The notes beneath the pieces were generated by a model. The model worked only from the letters and a program-made list of their open reading frames with translations. It was not told the DNA's origin and ran no database searches. The position numbers and the translations under genes were made by a program. DNA of 64,000 nt from Tetramitus jugosus (Eukaryota > Protista > Heterolobosea): NCBI GenBank assembly GCA_937625935.1, contig OW569356.1, positions 124,001 to 188,000 on the forward strand, given 5' to 3'. Numbering within the stretch: position 1 is the stretch's first letter; each line of letters opens with the position of its first letter. Below are positions 3,986 through 37,379 of the stretch, piece after piece.

Positions 3986-6900
3986 CTAATAGAATTGTTG
4001 TTGTCCAAAGTTTTGCTGGTCATATCCGTATCCATAGTTGTATTGAGCATACTGTTGTTGAGCATATGGATCAACATATTGTTGTTGTTGTTGTGGATAG
4101 GTTTGCTCAGGAGTCATAGATTGTTGAGTAACATCAGATTGCTCAACCTTCTTGGTTTGAGATTCCTTGTGTGCCTTGTACAATTCGTTCACCTTTGTGG
4201 TGTATTCACGAACGACTTGGATCATGTATGGCATAGCCATATCTTGGATTCTGTATCTCCAGCCCAATTCAAGAGCAACATCAGGTCTGATCAATTCGTA
4301 GCAAGTGTACAGACAAGCGGTGAAGCAATCCTTCAAGTCATTTTCGACAAAGAAGTTCAACAATTCCTCAGCAACATCTTGCTTACCAGAAGCAGCAGCA
4401 GCATCCATTGCGTCCTTATACAGGCTATCCTTCTTGCTCAAGGCAATTGAGGATTCCCATTGACGGTTCAATCTGTACAAGTAGGCAGCAATTCTTCTGA
4501 ATTCCAATAATTCATGGGATTCAATTTGCTTGGCCAATGCAACTTGATCGAAGTTTTGATAGTTGTCGATGGAATCTCTCAAGCTCTCGTAATCTTCTTC
4601 TTCAATATACAAGCTGTTCAAAGCATCGTTGACTTGAGCCAAGTTGTTGTTTTGTACATTTTGCAAATACTTCTTCATCAATGGAAGAGCATTGGTACCC
4701 TTTGCATCACGAGCAACTCTTTCGTGATCAATCTTTGGAGTCAAGACAACCAACAATCCATCAACGAGGCTTGGTTGTTCATCCAAGTAGAATTGGATGG
4801 CTCTGTAGTACAATTCCATATTTACAACCTTAACAATGGATTCAGTAAACACAGAGTGATCAAAGGCATCAGCAGATTGTTCCATCATAAGCTTGACAGC
4901 ATTGTCGAATTCATCATTGTGAGTGTACAAGAATCTCATCTCAGCCCACAAGTGATAAGTGTCACAGACATTCAACAACTTTGGAATGTTGGAACGAGCA
5001 TAGAACTTGCTAATGTGATCCATGAGCCTCTCTGGCTTGTACTTAGCGTACAAGACACCCAATTCGGTGAAGATACCCTTGTGGGCTCTTTCCAAACCAG
5101 TACCCTTGTCCAACAAGTCGATCAATTGCTCATAGTGACCTCTGACTTCATAGTAGTGAACCAAATCTTCCAATTCATCAGCATGAACAATAATGTTCAA
5201 ACCACAGGCCTGAGCATATCTGAATTCTCCAGCATCAACACAGGCAGCCATGACTTCCTTCCATGTTCTGATACTGTTAGCCTTGCTTGCAGCAGCAACA
5301 GCTTCCTTGTTCTTGCCAAGCTTGACCAAAGCAGAAGCAAGTCTAGCATAGTTGGAGATGCAAGAGAAGAGAATTCTGGCAGCTTCGTACAGACCTTCTT
5401 CGAAACATCTGTCACCAACAGTTTGGATTTGAGCAGTGTTAGGGCCAGAGATGAAGTCTTCCAAATCAGCAAGAGCATTGGAGGAAGGCTTCTGATCAGC
5501 ATACTTTGCCAAAGAGTAGACCAACTCGGTATCAATGTGAGAGTCGTGAATCTTTCCTCTGGCCATTCTCAAGAACTTGATCAAGGCTTGGTAGTTTTCG
5601 CTTCTCTCAGCAACAACAATGACCTCTTGGTAAGCATTTGCATCGTCAGCCTTCAAGAAGGATTCAATTGATTCGGAAATCAAATCTTGAGCTAGCTGAG
5701 CACGAGCAAGGATACTCCAAACATCAGCTTCATTGACAGTTGAAGCGAACTCGGAAGCTCTGCTAATGTTTTGAATGTTCTCGATCAAAACCATAACGGC
5801 GTTGGTGTTCAACTTGAACTTGCTGTAGATAACAAAGGCTTCTTCGTACAACTCTTGGTCGACAGCAATCTTTGCGATATCTGGAGCATCGTAGTTGTCC
5901 AACTTGTTGATATAGTCCATAACTCTGGTCTTGTCGGCCTTGATAGCAGTCAAAATCAACAAGTTTTGCAAGTTCTTGTTGTTTCTGAACTCCTTCTTTC
6001 CGTGAAGAACAATCTTCTCCAACAATTCAATCAATTCGTTTGGCAAGTTGGCAGTCATGAAAGCTTGAACAGTCACTGAGACTTCTTCAGACTTGTCTGA
6101 CTCTGGGAGAGCAGTTTGGACAACTTGATCAATCAATTGTCTTCTGTATTGATTCTCATCATTCAAGACATGAGCCCACAAGTCAGTGGATTGTCTTTCA
6201 ACGAGATATCTTGCTTGCAACTTGAACATTGCGTTCTTGTTGGTAACATCAACAAGTTCGACATCACATTGACCTCTCTTGTAAGCAATGAAAGCAAGAT
6301 GTGGATCTCTCTTCTCACAATACTTACCAACAACTCTGCTATCGTAGTATGGGTTGTTGGTCAAGAATTGCTCAGCGTCCTTGTTGGTATCAATGTAAGT
6401 CTTGGCAAGAGCGTTGTACAATGCAGGCTCCTGGATACCTTCTCCAGCTCTGGCTTCCAACCATTGAACAATGAGCTTCAGTCTGTTTCTCTTTTCGACT
6501 TCTTCAACAAGAGCATCGATTGGGCACATGGCACCAACAGCTTGAAGAATGTTTCTGATAAAGTTCTCATCAGCATCAACATCCAACAAAGCACCAACAA
6601 CTTGAGGAGTTCTCAATGGATTCTTTTGTCTGCACAAGGCATCAACAAACTTCAATTGACTGTTTCCGTACAAGAAATGAACCAACTCATCAATGAAATC
6701 GAATCTATCGCAAACGTTGACCAATGGTGTTTGGTCGGTAAGTCTAGATTCCTTCAAGAAGTTCTTGGTCTTCTCTGGATCATAGTAGTTGGACTCTCTG
6801 GTCACTCTTTCAACTTCGGCGAATTGACCAATACGGGTAGCAGCTTCAATATACTTGAAGTGAACCTCTGGGTTCTCGCTGTAGTCCACAATGGCACCCA

Positions 6901-14692: not shown

Positions 14693-15250
14693 ATGAGAAG
14701 ATTAATATCGAAGAAAAAGAAGAGTACCACATCGACCAATGCGCCAATCAGTCCAACTTGGCAGAGTTATCTGGATAAGAACCTGATGGCGTCAGGTTAT
14801 ATCCACAAGGCAACCATAGTTGGAATCACAGGTGGTTATACATGCTGGGCCACTAGTCACGATGGCTTCACACCAATCAATCTTCAAAGTCTTTGTGATG
14901 TGATGGATCAGGCTCCACCTTCTACGCCTACGACACCATCCGTTTATCCATCACAAGATGTGTTTGCGGGTGCACAACCACCGAGGGACGCATCTCAAGA
15001 TTCAGACAGTTTTATGAATATCAGGATCGAATTGGATGGGCAGACATTTGTACCATTGTATGTGTCGAGGAGTTCACTATATGCCAAGTCTGTTCCCTCA
15101 CTGACAACTCTCGATGCAAGTTATGGATGTGTAGTTGTGAAATGTTCGACTTGCGTCATCATCGCGACATATCATAGCACAACCAATCCAGGCAGTGCCA
15201 ACATGGTAGTAGAACGCTTGGGTTCATTTTTGAAAGATAAAGGGTACTGA
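14693..15250 (+). CDS. Divergent profilin-family protein
   Basis: TWQSYLDKNLMASGYIHKATIVG..WATS at the N-terminus and GCVVVKCSTCVIIATY....PGSANMVVERLGSFLKDKGY at the C-terminus match the profilin consensus. Confidence 0.85.
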   Translation: MRRLISKKKKSTTSTNAPISPTWQSYLDKNLMASGYIHKATIVGITGGYTCWATSHDGFTPINLQSLCDVMDQAPPSTPTTPSVYPSQDVFAGAQPPRDASQDSDSFMNIRIELDGQTFVPLYVSRSSLYAKSVPSLTTLDASYGCVVVKCSTCVIIATYHSTTNPGSANMVVERLGSFLKDKGY

Positions 15251-15287: not shown

Positions 15288-15506
15288 TTATGAATTAAGT
15301 TCAACTTGATTGTTGTCCATCTTCTCACATTTGTTATCGATGAGAGGTACACTTACTGACCGCATCAATAAATCAACATCTGTTTCATTGCTTCTGTTGT
15401 GTAATGAACTGTGAATTCTTCTAGGTGGGTCATCTTCACCTGGAAATTTGAAAATTGAGGGCAGTTTAGTTTTTCGTCCTCTTTCAATCGGAAACTCCTG
15501 TTCCAT
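15288..15506 (-). CDS. Detached C-terminal 72 codons of the 20050-15857 gene, separated from it by the MITE
   Basis: The ATG lies within the 11-bp target duplication in the same register as EQ-M-E of the large ORF. Removing the insertion fuses the two ORFs in frame. The stop is 37 bp from the convergent profilin stop, which is typical spacing here. Confidence 0.7.
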   Translation of the reverse strand: MEQEFPIERGRKTKLPSIFKFPGEDDPPRRIHSSLHNRSNETDVDLLMRSVSVPLIDNKCEKMDNNQVELNS

Positions 15507-15510
15507 TTGC

Positions 15511-15927
15511 GGAAATCTTAAAAGCAGGAAGGGAAACCTTATGCGCAGTAAACCTGAGAAACAGTAACTTTACTGCCAGGAAAGCAGTAAAATAGTTAAC
15601 GTATCTGCAATCAACAGATACGAAAGCTAAAAACAATATCAAGATCGTTTCTAATTTAATGAATAAACAACAGCTTCGCTCCTACATATCCAACAATTTC
15701 AACCGTATACGCTTCATTACTCTTCAGTATGATGATGACGAATTAGAAAGAATTAGAGTACGACATTCCCCAACACAGCTCTCTGATATGCGTAGTAGAA
15801 GCAAGTAGTAGTTTTGCTTTATAAAATTTCTGCTTTTCATCTTTTATGACTGCCTTTCAGTCAGTAAAGTTACTGCTTTTCAAAATTCCTGTTTTTCCGT
15901 TTCCGTTACTGCCTTTCATCTCCCTGC
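15511..15927. mobile_element. Non-autonomous Mutator(MULE)-like MITE, 417 bp, degenerate ~80-bp TIRs, 11-bp TSD
   Basis: Exact direct repeat GTTCCATTTGC at 15500-15510 and 15928-15938. Collinear inverted blocks: 15520-15537 vs 15899-15916 (15/18 identical) and 15562-15575 vs 15862-15875 (CAGTAACTTTACTG, 14/14). The interior is non-coding. Confidence 0.8.
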
Positions 15928-18900
15928 GTTCCATTTGCTCGAGCAAAGTGGAGGAATCTTGGGTTCCATTAATCGATATCGTAATACTGTTATTCGATTC
16001 AATTGGGGGATAGACGGTGGACTTCTGAAAGAATCCTTTGGGGATGCTAAAATTTTCAAGCTTCCTGTGAATTAGAACGGGAGGATGATTCTTCAGAATA
16101 CGAGAATAGTCAGGACTATCATCGTCTAGATCCCAATCTGACTGTGTTCCTACTCTCTTTCTTAACCACTCTCTTTTTGTTGGACGCTTAGCAAGCGAGT
16201 GATCACTAGTCTGGCGCGACTCAGATCGATTCTGGACTTCGAAGCTATCCAATACCAAGTCTTGATGATCTCTGTTACGTTCCGGGCTTCTCCTAGTGGC
16301 ATGCAATTTCCTTTGACCTATTCTATTTAAATTAATGATAAATTGATCATCAGGTTCTAAATACTGATCAAGCATCTTCAACAGTTTCTCTTCCTGTTCG
16401 TGCATATAAATCTCTCTCTTCTTATTCCACTTCGCTTGCGATGACGAGTCTGTTAATCGACGAATTACATCTAGAATTGAAGAGCTGCTCTCTATTTCAT
16501 CATTACTTCCTTGGGAAGTTTGCTTATGGTTATCGTTATCTTGGTTTCCAGAGGATGAGCGCTCCCTTTTGTTCGCTTTGAACGGTAGGAGATTGCGTTG
16601 TTTGCGAAGATTGGATCGATGAGATGCGCCAGGTTGAATGTTGAAGTCTCCTTCGAGCGAAGCACTTTCACTAATTTCTATCAAGCGTTCTTTGCTAGAC
16701 CTATGTTGAGAATCTATTAGCTCGGATTCATTCTCGCTAGTTCCTTCAAGGTCTGAATACACTTGATTCTTCAGAAAAGGTTTTCTAAATTCTTGTTGAT
16801 TGCTTGACTGCAGATAACTGGAATGAGACTCTTTGTTGAGTACGTGTACCTGGGAGGTTGAAGGGATAGTTTTCTCTTGGCTAGAGGTCGGAGTCCTAGA
16901 ACGGTCGAGGCGGACATTACCTCTTTCAATACTTCCCACACTCAATATCACATGAGAAGGAGAATCCTTATGTTCTTCTCGTTTGGGCATTGATCTTGGT
17001 ACATCATTTTGAATCTTGCCGGAAGTGAGATTTCCCTTTAATCTTTGTTTCTTGAAGGAATCCTTTTGCTGAGGATAAATTGTTGAAGGATATGGGGTTG
17101 AAGGTTTGTTGTGTCTGGGATTACTCTTGTTTGTATTGCCAGTGTTAAGAATCTGGAAATTTTGTTTTCCATGCGATCTGAAATTATCTAGGTCCTTTCT
17201 AAGAGCATGTGGCCTATTGGGATTATCAGAATCCACGAGATCATGTTCACTATTTTGATCCTTTCCTTCAGATGAAGCGAAAAAAGATGATAACAACGCC
17301 AATTGATCTGTGAGATATCTGTTTCTTGCAATTAGGTTTGCTACTTTGTTTTCTCGATCTCCATCATCGCTCGATAATATAGATTGTGCCAGTTCTTGGT
17401 CACGAGCAGTCGTGTTCAGCGTTTGTGGAGCCGAAATTGAGTTCGATACTTGCGATACCGGATGTAAGTTCGATTGCACTATTGGCTCCATCAACAAACT
17501 AGTACTGAGTGAATCCATTTTATCAGGAGAACTCAGTTCTTCTCTGACATGGTTTGGTGGAATGCTTTCGTCGACAGGTTCTTGTTTAACAGGTTTCTTG
17601 TCAGGAACTCCGAGGTTAAAGATCGCGCGATTGGAGGACTTTATCACATTGTGCATTTGTGATACGATTGGGAGTAACCCAGGAAATTGTTCTTTCATAT
17701 CAGACTCTACGATCGAGGAAAGTTGCCTCCGGAGAGCAACAAGGTATGAATGTAACATCCGCATAAACCCCACAACATCAGCTGATATCTCACACTGTGA
17801 TGCTCCTTGAATGAATGTCCGCAATACGGATATCAATGATTTAGCAACATTGAGATTATTCGTAGCTTCCTTCGTAGACGGATCGAGAGGTCTTCGTACA
17901 AATCTTTCTCTCATACTCCTGACAGGCGTTGATGTTTTGTTTTCCAAATTCTCCTTCTCTTTAGTATCGTTAAACTTACCTTGTTTGATACTATGCTGTT
18001 CTGCTTCCTCCTCCTCATTATCTGTATCGGATGATTCATCCTCGGATGTGATTAGTGTAGCATCTATCATGCCAACCTCTGGATCCCTCTCTCCTGTTTC
18101 ACTTGAAGTTAGAATAACAGATTGGGGATTTGTATCTTCTTTGTTCGATTTTCTTCGGGTACTTTTCCTTCGTTTCTTGTTTTGACCATTTAAGTCATCT
18201 TCGGTAATCTGATCTCTGACCTTCTTCGCAGCCATAAATCGTTCTCTTCGCATTTCTTCCAAAGAATCAAGGGAATTATCGGTTTGATGCTTTCTAGGAG
18301 ATGTTTGAGTCCAAACATGCTTTGTCGACCTAATAATTGACCTTCGTCTAACAGATAATTTCACTGTTTCATTGTTCGCACTCTGTTCTTTGGTTTGTAC
18401 TTGTTCCATGTAGCTAATGAAGTGTTGTTGAAGATCTATGATCTTATTTCGCAGTTGAGAATTTTCGGTTTTCAATCGGTCGATCTTATGAAAGAGGGTT
18501 GAAACACTGTACACTTGGTCATCTTGAGATGAATTCTTCTCCATAAGAAAATTGTCCACGGCATCCTGATGACTAATCCCAGACTCAACATTTATAATTG
18601 ATTTATCATCGGCAATGTAGGTCACAGTTTGCATTGAATTCCTTCTTGCCTCATTCATAAAATGCGCTTTCTTATGTTTGACAAGGGTTGTGTTTGGATT
18701 AATGTGGTACGAACTTTTCTTCAACCTTTTGTTAAGCTCGATAATCTTATCCTCCTTCTCCTGAATTACAAAAAGTAAAAACTGGCGTTCTCTTTCATGG
18801 TTCTCATGAATGGATGTAGTTGGAGTCTGAGTCTGAGTTCTAGGTTCTACACGAACAACGGGTGCACTTGAACTCATATTATTTATGTCATATCTTGTCC

Positions 18901-20050
18901 TTAACTCTATTTCTCTTCTCTTCTCTTCACGTTTTATGTCTGCCACATATTGTTGATATTGTTGTTGCACAATCATTACCTCCTGTTGAATTTTGTGGGA
19001 GATTACTTCTTCCCGTTTAATAACTTTCAAGAGGATCCTGTTCTTCGAAGTAATGGCCTTTTCCCTGTTATTCATCTTTTCTTTTAGTTTCATATTCATA
19101 TCGGTCATTTTATCTAAGTTCTGGAGTAATGTTTGATATGATAGCCTGAAAGCAGCATTCATTTGGAATTCTGATGCAGCATTTACAGACAGCCCCTCCA
19201 CAAATTGTTTTACATGCTCTTTTGCATCTTGGAGACACGAAGCTGAAGTATCAAGATATTCAGTACCGCTGTGCATCAAATCTTCTTCTTCCTTTTGTAT
19301 TACGGAAAGCTTTTTGGAAACATCTTTCAATGCCAAGTCTTGTCTGTATCTCAAGAATTCGTTGAGAGCAGAGTCGCTTTGATCAAGAGATTCTAATCGA
19401 TCCAGGCGAGAATATGTCTGGGACATACTCGGGAGTTCATCCTCTTCTGAGTGAGTTGAACCCGATATCTCTTCCAATTCCTGATCAACTCTTTCCTCCA
19501 ATGACGACTTTCGACCTTCGACCCACATAAGTAATTCAGACTCTAGCGCCATTCTCTCCAATATCTTCTTGCTCTGATTCTTCATTAAGTTGTTCACAGA
19601 TTGTTTACTCTTCTCAATAAAGTGATTCCGTCCATCAATTGAGAACAAATGTCGATTGAAAACACCATTCACTAGTTCTGAAAATTGTAATTCATCAGAA
19701 ACTTCCTCTTTCTTTTTCTCATTACTTGAAATGAGTTTACTGGATAGTGATTTTGTTAACAATTGCATCTTCTTCTCCATTTGGTTGACTAAATCATTCT
19801 GTGCTTCGCTCACTGTGTTCTTCAATTTTGCTTCTTCCTCTTTCTTCTTCTTCTCCATGAGCATCAACAGCATCATCATAATCTCTGGAATAATTCGTAG
19901 GTGATTATTGTTATTGAGCATCCGCTGCATCTTGGCTGCCTTTCTTTCTGATTCTGAGACAATCGTTGTGTCATCATCTCGATTCAAAGAACTCGACACA
20001 ACTGGATCAGACACTGACTTTGAAGAGTGATGATTGATGGCTCCATTCAT
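15857..20050 (-). CDS. Large (1397-aa) coiled-coil/low-complexity hypothetical protein; its last ~23 codons and stop come from the MITE
   Basis: Uninterrupted 4.2-kb ORF with an N-terminal coiled coil and an S-rich disordered C-terminal half. No family recognised. Confidence 0.8.
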   Translation of the reverse strand: MNGAINHHSSKSVSDPVVSSSLNRDDDTTIVSESERKAAKMQRMLNNNNHLRIIPEIMMMLLMLMEKKKKEEEAKLKNTVSEAQNDLVNQMEKKMQLLTKSLSSKLISSNEKKKEEVSDELQFSELVNGVFNRHLFSIDGRNHFIEKSKQSVNNLMKNQSKKILERMALESELLMWVEGRKSSLEERVDQELEEISGSTHSEEDELPSMSQTYSRLDRLESLDQSDSALNEFLRYRQDLALKDVSKKLSVIQKEEEDLMHSGTEYLDTSASCLQDAKEHVKQFVEGLSVNAASEFQMNAAFRLSYQTLLQNLDKMTDMNMKLKEKMNNREKAITSKNRILLKVIKREEVISHKIQQEVMIVQQQYQQYVADIKREEKRREIELRTRYDINNMSSSAPVVRVEPRTQTQTPTTSIHENHERERQFLLFVIQEKEDKIIELNKRLKKSSYHINPNTTLVKHKKAHFMNEARRNSMQTVTYIADDKSIINVESGISHQDAVDNFLMEKNSSQDDQVYSVSTLFHKIDRLKTENSQLRNKIIDLQQHFISYMEQVQTKEQSANNETVKLSVRRRSIIRSTKHVWTQTSPRKHQTDNSLDSLEEMRRERFMAAKKVRDQITEDDLNGQNKKRRKSTRRKSNKEDTNPQSVILTSSETGERDPEVGMIDATLITSEDESSDTDNEEEEAEQHSIKQGKFNDTKEKENLENKTSTPVRSMRERFVRRPLDPSTKEATNNLNVAKSLISVLRTFIQGASQCEISADVVGFMRMLHSYLVALRRQLSSIVESDMKEQFPGLLPIVSQMHNVIKSSNRAIFNLGVPDKKPVKQEPVDESIPPNHVREELSSPDKMDSLSTSLLMEPIVQSNLHPVSQVSNSISAPQTLNTTARDQELAQSILSSDDGDRENKVANLIARNRYLTDQLALLSSFFASSEGKDQNSEHDLVDSDNPNRPHALRKDLDNFRSHGKQNFQILNTGNTNKSNPRHNKPSTPYPSTIYPQQKDSFKKQRLKGNLTSGKIQNDVPRSMPKREEHKDSPSHVILSVGSIERGNVRLDRSRTPTSSQEKTIPSTSQVHVLNKESHSSYLQSSNQQEFRKPFLKNQVYSDLEGTSENESELIDSQHRSSKERLIEISESASLEGDFNIQPGASHRSNLRKQRNLLPFKANKRERSSSGNQDNDNHKQTSQGSNDEIESSSSILDVIRRLTDSSSQAKWNKKREIYMHEQEEKLLKMLDQYLEPDDQFIINLNRIGQRKLHATRRSPERNRDHQDLVLDSFEVQNRSESRQTSDHSLAKRPTKREWLRKRVGTQSDWDLDDDSPDYSRILKNHPPVLIHRKLENFSIPKGFFQKSTVYPPIESNNSITISINGTQDSSTLLEQMERREMKGSNGNGKTGILKSSNFTD

Positions 20051-22548: not shown

Positions 22549-23880
22549 ATGACAGATAAAAATCCACTCTCCTTTGGAAATGACAACAAGAGCTCGACCA
22601 AAGATTGGTCACCCATGAGTGATGTTGAGAAAGAGAGAAGAAACTGGCTCATCCACACTCTGTTCACTCGTCAAGATTTTGAGGAGTGTCTAAAAGTTAT
22701 TGAACACCAGCTTTCCATGTGCCAAGGCCTATGTGAATACGCAATCTATGTCAAAGCTCTAATCAAGAGACACCACGGTGAGATCAATGAGAGCTTACAG
22801 TTGTTCCAAGCAGCAACAATGCTCAATCCCAACAACGTTCAAAATTTGAAGCAAGTAGGAAGAAGCTTGTTTCTGCTAGGAAAGCACACTGATGCTCTAG
22901 AGTTGTACGGTGAAGCCCAAAAACTCTCCTCCGAAGACTGGGATATTTGGTACAATAAGGGACTGTGTTTTCTCGGGATGAAACAGTTTGATGATGCAGA
23001 AGAGTGCTTTACGAGGTCAAACTCCATACAGAGACATGAATCAACATATATCCAGCTCGGAAAAGTATACACGAGCCAAGAAAAGTATCAAGAGGCTATT
23101 GATATTCACCTGGAAGCATTAGAGTAAGTAACTCGTTCTGACTTTCTGGTTCAATGTATGTACTAACTCATACCCCTTCGAAGATATTCACCAGATAACC
23201 CAGAACTATTGACCACCATTGGTCTATTGTACCTGAGAGTAGGAGATAACATGAGAGCATTTGATTATCTAGGGAACTCGTTGACTCACGATCCAAAGAA
23301 TCCAAAAACAATTCTAGCAACTGGAAGTATTATACAAGATCATAACGAAATGGATGTTGCCCTGAGTAAATATCGAATTGCAGCTGTACATACACCAAAC
23401 AGTGCTCAATTGTGGAATAATATTGGCATGTGTTTCTTTGGGAAGCAGAACCATGTCGCAGCCATTGCTTGTTTAAAACGAGCACTCTATCTCGCTCCAT
23501 TCGAATGGATTATCGCATACAACTTGGGCCTCGTGCACTTGAACACTGGCCAATATGCATCTGCTTTTCATTACTTCTCTGCCTCGATCAACCTCAAGCA
23601 CGACTTTGCCAGTTCATACATGTATCTGGCAATTACTCTGAGCAGACTGGACGATTTTGAGAATGCTTGTACTGCATACGAAAAAGCAATTGAAATGGAC
23701 AATGATCATCTCTTCGAGCTCAACTACGCTGTTACCTTGTACAATCATGATGAAATCGAAGCTGCGAGACACCATTACTCTCAATTCGAAGAAATGTTCA
23801 AACAATTGGACGAAGAGGAACAAAACAGTGATCCAACTATCCTCGAGATTAGACAACGACTTTCTGTTGCGTTAGCTTAA
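22549..23880 (+). CDS. BBS4: BBSome TPR subunit BBS4 (2 exons: 22549-23123, 23184-23880)
   Basis: RRNWLIH, CEYAIYVKALIKR, LKQVGRSLFLLGKH, LWNNIGMCFFGK, IAYNLGLVHL.TGQYASAFHY. GTAAG...TACTAAC...AAG intron. Confidence 0.95.
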
Positions 23881-36393: not shown

Positions 36394-37379
36394 ATGGTAT
36401 GTCCACCAACACTCGAAACAATGTTCATCATCAACTCCTAGAGGAAGAAGATCTAACACACTTGTACATTTTTCACACAGTTACCACTGACTCTCATTAG
36501 AGGTGCACAAGGCAACCAAATGGTATTGTTGTTTGATCTCCTTTTTTTTTGGTCGCTTTTTTGTCAAATTTTTTTTTCTCATCATTAAACTTCTTTTTTC
36601 CATTTTCAATTCAACCAACCAGTTGGTAGAGCTAAAAAATGGAGAAACATTTAATGGAACATTGGTGAATTGCGATAGTTGGATGAACATGAACTTGAAG
36701 GATGTCATTTGTACTTCACCTGTAACGTATCATCACATGTATTTAGACCTTTCATTCTCCCTATTTTATGCATTATTAAGTGTCGTCGTACTAACCCATA
36801 AAAAAAAACAACAATCAACAACTGTGTGCGTATCCATCAATGTGAACCGGAATGAAAATGCGCAACGCATATGGTGATAAAATATCGACATGAAAAAACG
36901 AATCTATCTATATATGTGTATATATGTGGAAATTGAATGCATTCAATCGATTGGGAATTGTGTGAACTATATATAAAAACGAAATGTAGGATGGAACACA
37001 ATTTTGGAAAATGGATGAGTGTTATGTGAGAGGATACACTGTAAAATATTTGCGTATTCCAGAGGAGGTGATTGATACGATATCGGAAGAAACGAAGAGT
37101 ATGTTTGTTGTTGTTGTTGTTGTTGTTGTCGCTGGTAGAGTGGTGGTGGTGATGTTGAAATGGGAAAAAGTTTGCTCTAACAAAAACTCAAAATATATTT
37201 TTGAAATGTTTTTCACCATAGAGACGAGAGGAACTGCAACGAGAGGACGTGGTCGAGGCACATCATCCTTCTCAGGTGGCAGAGGCGGTGGACAACAGAG
37301 AGAAGGTGGAAGCAGAGGAGGTGGCCGAGGTGGTGCCAAATCAGGTGGCCGAGGCAGAGGCACAGCTAGGCAGCAGTGA
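36394..37379 (+). CDS. LSM4: Sm-like protein LSm4 (5 exons: 36394-36396, 36481-36522, 36623-36721, 36990-37098, 37222-37379)
   Basis: Spliced product M|[14 protein letters not shown]|[33 protein letters not shown]|[24 protein letters not shown] with an RG/RGG-rich tail. All four introns are GT-AG. Confidence 0.93.

Follow-up and report, generated by a model that had tools for sequence, protein, structure and literature searches.

Judging from sequence comparisons, a gene of the heterolobosean amoeba Tetramitus jugosus has most likely been truncated by a very recent insertion of a Mutator-like element (MULE), with simple loss of the last 5% of the encoded protein. The locus lies in a 64,000-nucleotide stretch, called the window here (assembly GCA_937625935.1, contig OW569356.1, positions 124,001 to 188,000 of the forward strand; C13:124001-188000). 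The element is 419 bp long, carries terminal inverted repeats (TIRs), is flanked by a 9-bp target-site duplication (TSD) and brings a premature TGA into the frame of its host gene. A first-pass annotation, made from the letters of the window, had recognised a Mutator-like non-autonomous element with a TSD in a coding exon, and the TSDs, the TIRs and an autonomous MULE partner found in the same genome bear this identification out. It had also proposed that the element may be spliced out as a new intron, a reading weighed below. The features of the locus, in window coordinates, are as follows.

15929-20050, minus strand: codons 1-1374 of the interrupted gene, host-derived; a coiled-coil, Ser/Asn-rich uncharacterised protein
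15857-15928, minus strand: 23 element-derived codons, RREMKGSNGNGKTGILKSSNFTD (RREMKG...NFTD), and the premature TGA (15859-15857)
15288-15506, minus strand: orphaned C-terminal tail of 72 codons, the first two (ME) from the duplicated target site
15500-15508, plus strand: left TSD copy GTTCCATTT, 9 bp
15928-15936, plus strand: right TSD copy GTTCCATTT
15509-15927, plus strand: non-autonomous MULE, an internal-deletion derivative, 419 bp
15509-15590, plus strand: 5' TIR with subterminal repeats of the AAAG(G)CAGTAAC type
15846-15927, plus strand: 3' TIR, whose minus-strand AAAG(G)CAGTAAC repeats give both GTAAC 'donors'
15659-15808, plus strand: remnant of ORF1, the first ~48 codons of the autonomous copy's 290-aa ORF1 and then a stop

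The interrupted gene and the limits of the element

An 11-bp TSD around 417 bp had been described in the first reading. The exact 11-mer GTTCCATTTGC is indeed present twice, at 15500-15510 and 15928-15938 with 417 bp between, and comparison with four other insertions places the true element at 15509-15927, running GCGGAAAT...CCCTGC with GC as its first bases. The 11-bp repeat here resolves into the 9-bp TSD GTTCCATTT and a coincident GC (15509-15510, the element's first two bases), so that the repeat itself stands while the lengths of duplication and element are corrected to 9 bp and 419 bp. The element ends form collinear imperfect inverted repeats of ~80 bp (70 matches; score 67.5 vs 30.5 +/- 5.7 for shuffles, z ~6.5), and the AAAG(G)CAGTAAC-type motif occurs in several copies at each end, in opposite orientation between the ends. 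A fold of the whole element pairs through the TIRs with a modest z of -2.3. No intact open reading frame (ORF) is found in it. Its plus strand is the transposase-sense strand, and the element is therefore antisense to the host gene.

On the minus strand, an ORF of 1397 codons (20050-15857) runs into the element and stops after 23 element codons at the TGA that, as the first-pass annotation had stated, is supplied by the TIR. Virtual excision of the element and one repeat copy leaves a single open frame of 1374 + 72 codons, which was checked for frame and stops only, the homology searches being run with the pieces separately. From this rejoined frame it follows that the ancestral gene had ~1444 codons and that the insertion lies at codon 1375.

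The rejoining of the two ORFs, and the claim that the 72-codon ORF is the true tail of the gene, were both upheld by P0001 (Logan assembly, 1444 aa, 48% identity), the only homologue in a large protein collection, which is uninterrupted across the junction. The upstream piece aligns to it as far as ...LLDQTE, at residue 1379, and the 72-codon tail aligns to residues 1379-1439 with 33% identity (E 4e-4), EQEFPIER...TKLPSIF...DLLMRSVSVPL facing EHDLPIEK...TKLPPIF...DVLFRSASAPL. An empty site in a relative had been suggested as a check, and by this alignment P0001 is such a site at the protein level, with a conserved tail. The host protein has no Pfam family, and no ESM Atlas match was informative. 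The 200 codons that precede the stop (177 host, 23 element-derived) were used in a word search of the protein collection, which returned no fragments from the same species.

The flanks of the locus are single copy in the assembly, and the primary assembly holds only the inserted allele. An empty-site haplotig inside the assembly was considered and rejected, the flank being single copy. The deposited assembly of T. jugosus CCAP 1588/3C represents one haplotype, was manually curated with haplotypic duplications removed, and is accompanied by a separate alternate-haplotype assembly (PMC11106597). The insertion may be heterozygous. A long-read mis-join could also have placed the element in a locus that is really uninterrupted, and the manual curation and removal of haplotypic duplications (PMC11106597) may be counted on that side. 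Against it, the precise 9-bp host duplication and the termini identical to those of four other insertions form a transposition signature, and the flanks are single copy; an assembly artefact is exceedingly improbable.

Only 38 bp separate the original stop of the host gene (15288, minus strand) from that of a convergent profilin-like ORF (14693-15250, plus strand); the 3' ends of both genes must be shared or overlapping.

Other copies and the age of the insertion

Copies were sought across all 56 contigs of the assembly (26.35 Mb). The entire family in it consists of four short copies, one autonomous copy and two or three diverged fragments. The first-pass annotation had proposed a genome search for copies with 9-11-bp TSDs, and three more short copies were obtained, with duplications of 9-10 bp; two insertions of the family lie in exon 3' ends. 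The copies outside the window occupy unrelated sites.

C50:32812-33230: copy, 100% identical, intergenic
C23:27870-28288: copy, 100% identical, at the 3' end of a Kelch-repeat/F-box-like gene
C23:492390-492808: copy, 98% identical, 19 codons upstream of a methyltransferase ORF (5'-proximal)
C50:120527-125152: autonomous copy, splitting a 418-codon minus-strand ORF to which no function is assigned

When 200 bp of flank were added to the search, homology ended within a few bases of the element termini in every copy. Each insertion has its own direct repeat, of 9, 9, 10, 9(10) and 10 bp over the five independent insertions, those at the four other sites being GTTATTTTT, ATATGAAGTA, AAATTAAAA and CTTGGTGCAG. 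The last of these flanks the autonomous element, which is 4626 bp long and has two intact ORFs (290 aa and 1153 aa). Positions 1-295 of the short element correspond to positions 1-296 of the autonomous one, and positions 299-419 to 4506-4626, at 97% identity. The two blocks lie 4.2 kb apart in the autonomous copy, and this match makes the short element an internal-deletion derivative in which only the outer parts of the 4626-bp sequence are kept, 295 bp at the 5' end and 121 bp at the 3' end.

All 419 bp of the window copy are identical to two other copies, and its TIR mismatches are common to the 98% copy and to the autonomous copy. Because identical copies with the same mismatches sit elsewhere, the imperfect TIRs represent the native state of the family and not decay. 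The full identity to other copies means that the insertion is very young, and in so young an insertion the open 72-codon tail carries no information. The earlier argument that the TIRs had decayed while the tail stayed open is thereby overturned; measured by identity between copies, the insertion is evolutionarily very recent.

The two insertions in exon 3' ends have mutually opposite orientations, and the others are 5'-proximal, intergenic and mid-ORF. In the window, 70-86% of the sequence lies in stop-to-stop ORFs of at least 100-200 codons, so that three of five insertions inside ORFs is the expectation for unselected, recent insertion. The copy in the Kelch/F-box gene sits 39 codons before the stop of that gene, which shares its strand with the element; at the junction a TAG arises from the final two bases of the duplicated target together with the element's first G. 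The introner-like family envisaged in the first-pass annotation finds no match in four short copies and one autonomous copy at mixed sites, only two of them in exon 3' ends and these in opposite orientations.

As in a miniature inverted-repeat transposable element (MITE), the short element is non-coding, has TIRs and a TSD, and derives from an autonomous source, but it does not reach high copy number. The name 'non-autonomous MULE' is safer than MITE, copy number being low. At C52:303227-303457 the 5' end of the element, with the beginning of ORF1, has a relative of 76% identity that diverges completely after ~250 bp; this is either a truncated copy or a member of an older, related subfamily.

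Transposable elements have been reported to make up 0.14% of the T. jugosus genome, with MULEs unmentioned (bioRxiv 10.64898/2026.06.24.734286). The present data point to a Mutator-type family that is active now or was so until very recently, in a heterolobosean genome described as almost transposon-free. It consists of one intact autonomous copy and, as deletion derivatives, three copies with 100% identity, and its insertions enter coding sequence at roughly the rate that chance predicts.

Truncation and splicing at the insertion

In the favoured explanation, the transposase encoded by ORF2 of the 4.6-kb autonomous partner would mobilise the non-autonomous element in trans. Cut-and-paste transposition would have placed the element in codon 1375 of the 1444-codon gene, and repair of the staggered cut would have produced the 9-bp duplication GTTCCATTT. 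The protein would then lose its conserved 70-residue tail, gain 23 element-encoded residues and end at the TGA within the element's inverted repeat. Such an allele may be tolerated since no more than the final 5% of the protein is altered, or because the other haplotype keeps the empty site, or for both reasons. Several points weigh against this explanation. Loss of the tail is probably not neutral, given its conservation with the orthologue; reading through to the TGA is itself a prediction; and a GTAACG hexamer in the TIR is identical to a genuine donor of the host, in the LSm4 gene, with one acceptor that restores the frame. The features that bear on splicing are listed here.

15554-15909, minus strand: hypothetical intron of 356 nt (320 nt from donor 15873), the only frame-restoring GT..AG combination
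15557-15605, minus strand: predicted RNA hairpin lying between TTAAC and the acceptor CTCAG (-16.9 kcal/mol, z -3.6)
36722-36989: first LSm4 intron, with a GTAACG donor and TACTAAC ~70 nt in
37099-37221: second LSm4 intron

The splicing pattern of the host was taken from the introns of the window. The first-pass annotation had cited the GTAAC donor of LSm4 at 36722 as a precedent, and it is genuine: exon 36623-36721 matches Pfam LSM positions 13-42 (6.5e-10), and the open frame continues beyond the TAG at 36987-36989. The acceptor is preceded by ~197-209 AG-free nt in the first LSm4 intron and by 51 in the second. Among 12 intron candidates in the window, 11 use GTATGT, GTAAGT/GTAAGG or GTACGT donors, which makes GTAACG, with one in 12, a minority type. 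Candidates with a CTAAC/CTCAC-like motif use the next AG downstream of it as acceptor. This initial collection was biased by an AG-free pre-filter, circular for the first-AG rule, and the screen was repeated with strict GTATGT/GTAAGT/GTACGT donors and ORF continuity, and with no AG criterion. It yielded seven clear cases, in which the most upstream feasible acceptor was preceded by 31-154 AG-free nt. The rule thus rests on nine window introns, the seven from the strict screen and the two of LSm4 (placed by domain and ORF continuity), which together show 31-209 AG-free nt before the acceptor; only 14.6% of AG-to-AG gaps in the window reach 31 nt. An unconstrained hexamer-enrichment screen for splice signals in the window gave pure noise. 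The host spliceosome is unusual, with the branch near the intron start and the first AG taken.

The proposal of a nascent intron holds that the transcript is spliced from A|GTAACG (15909) or A|GTAACT (15873) to the acceptor TTTCTCAG| (15555-15554), so that the tail is kept behind an insert of 24 or 36 residues. Its arithmetic, as worked out in the first-pass annotation, is correct. Both donors are in phase 1 on the minus strand, and among 25 downstream AGs the frame is recovered free of stops only with the one at 15555-15554, which would add SLLRIRFPFLLLRFPQ; no other combination is stop-free. The donor GTAACG is the bona fide donor of the LSm4 intron, the acceptor has a pyrimidine run, and introns derived from transposons (introners) have been described from other eukaryotes (PMC9860276, PMC12130899). 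In shuffled elements, a strict donor-like 5-mer before the first stop together with a frame-restoring AG arose in only 6%, a figure that becomes 38% if any GT is allowed. Two AGs (15574 and 15569) lie between the only TTAAC and the proposed acceptor, and the predicted hairpin would hide both of them.

The same sequence fits the local pattern in its donor type and departs from it in the branch motif and the AG-free tract. Only 14 AG-free nt precede the proposed acceptor, against 31-209 in the nine local introns, and the proposed intron contains 20-23 internal AGs and no CTAAC/CTCAC, whereas the local acceptor is the first AG after such a motif. The first AG after the TTAAC, at 15574, shifts the frame, and the hairpin that would bury the competing AGs also pairs the TTAAC. 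The other 11 of 12 local candidates use other donor types, the GTAAC donors are simply part of the subterminal repeat, and the 100% identity to other copies leaves selection no time to have shaped the insertion. In the Kelch/F-box exon copy no frame-restoring GT-AG pair was found, and that exon has no rescue of this kind. The acceptor of the earlier proposal is therefore at odds with the way local introns are spliced. A newly born intron, its GTAACG donor and pyrimidine-AG acceptor given by subterminal repeats and its competing AGs hidden by a repeat-derived hairpin, is very unlikely. If it were real, the full-length protein would carry a 24-residue insert, and the locus would be a dated, sequence-identical case of a MULE seeding an intron in an intron-poor lineage. 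Under simple truncation, the GTAAC and pyrimidine-AG motifs would be by-products of transposase-binding subterminal repeats and not evolved splice sites.

Cryptic splicing that does not restore the frame was also considered. Here the GTAACG donor would be joined, past a TACTGAC branch-like motif (15866-15860), to the first AG at 15855 or 15851, removing a mini-intron of 56-60 nt that contains the TGA; another element-encoded stop would still truncate the protein. This arrangement follows the local order of donor, branch-like motif and first AG, and its size matches that of the 60-nt intron at 23124-23183, which also has a CTGAC. On the other hand, the distance from branch to AG would be 8-12 nt, vs ~15 nt or more in local introns with a branch-like motif, the splicing is predicted only, and the outcome for the protein would be the same as in simple truncation. 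Such splicing is improbable.

The locus offers a natural test of the host spliceosome when it faces a foreign 419-bp insert with donor- and acceptor-like motifs. Frame-restoring splicing, if it occurs, would provide a rare dated example of intron birth; otherwise the element would be an ordinary gene-truncating insertion and a useful marker of strain or haplotype polymorphism.

Superfamily assignment and comparison with known systems

The hallmarks of a Mutator element are all present in this family: TSDs of ~9-11 bp, long TIRs and an autonomous partner with a MURA-type DDE transposase. ORF1 of the autonomous copy (290 aa) could be assigned to no family. ORF2 (1153 aa) is a fusion of SAP, Ulp1/SENP protease, MULE DDE and SWIM-like finger, in which the SAP motif is weak and the Ulp1/C48 protease domain is clear (Pfam, 7.7e-16; SENP1 in the PDB, 1.5e-19). 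A PDB sequence search of ORF2 returned the protease only, apart from a C-terminal chromodomain match of E 0.73 that was not relied on. Downstream of the protease, invariant GxDxxxK, D, CRFH and NNxxE motifs (D..D..CRFH..E) are followed by a CxCx(n)CxH finger.

With ORF2 as the sole query, no transposase was called by Pfam (SWIM E 0.15, Transposase_mut E 0.67), and two paralogues of ORF2 gave sub-threshold Pfam MULE matches over the full domain (E 0.0076 and 0.038). A word search with ORF2 retrieved three close relatives only, and a profile of the DDE region retrieved 477 proteins at E <= 0.001. Ten full-length profile matches were sampled. PF10551 (MULE) is present at the aligned position in six of them (best 2.3e-17, 63.7 bits) and SWIM in four; one has Transposase_mut together with a ZSWIM1-3 RNaseH-like domain. 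On the evidence of these profile matches and the 9-10 bp TSDs, the family is a divergent clade within the Mutator superfamily.

The family resembles MULEs and their deletion derivatives, such as maize Mu1 relative to MuDR, in its 9-10 bp TSDs and ~80-bp imperfect TIRs with subterminal repeats, and in a short element that arises by internal deletion of an autonomous one and would be mobilised in trans. The transposase, with D..D..C(2)H..E and then a SWIM-type CxCx(n)CxH, is also MULE-like, and its homologues carry Pfam MULE, SWIM and Transposase_mut. Unlike classical MULE cases, the host is a heterolobosean amoeba and the DDE domain falls below the Pfam cut-off; unlike classical high-copy MITEs, there are four short copies.

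Ulp1-protease-carrying MULEs of plants are known as KI-MULEs. The family described here shares with KI-MULEs and with Ginger1 (PMC2836005) a C48/Ulp1 SUMO-protease domain within a DNA transposon. The protease lies in a single 1153-aa ORF with SAP upstream and MULE DDE/SWIM downstream, and Ginger1, with its integrase-type transposase and 4-bp duplications, does not fit (PMC2836005).

The splice-like motifs in the window copy have parallels of two kinds. Ds and Mu insertions in maize exons are spliced via cryptic sites in the element ends, as shown by cDNA. The terminal repeats here likewise offer donor- and acceptor-like motifs, which are a sequence possibility in conflict with the local first-AG pattern. 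Like introners (PMC9860276, PMC12130899), the window copy is a non-autonomous TIR/TSD element placed within a coding exon, and on the host sense strand one of its ends has a nearby GT and the other a nearby pyrimidine-AG. Introner families comprise many copies as annotated spliced introns of unrelated genes (PMC9860276, PMC12130899), whereas this family has four copies, two of them in exons. As for frame rescue, the window copy has one GTAAC...AG pair, a potential splice in the letters only, and the C23 exon copy has none.

Four further loci pass the Pfam MULE cut-off (C15:389591-389884, C47:206474-206764, C12:132354-132641 and C20:135373-135621). The ORF2-family profile does not reach these other canonical Pfam-MULE loci, so that two or more separate Mutator clades are present in the genome. 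Near contig starts, diverged or broken sequences related to the Ulp1-MULE transposase are found at C4:2107-3705, C21:871-1536, C9:6021-6539, C52:1550-1981, C19:4649-5086, C27:2690-3193, C28:15316-17077 and C50:15948-19086. The presence of many old Ulp1-MULE relatives within a few kb of contig starts suggests subtelomeric accumulation.

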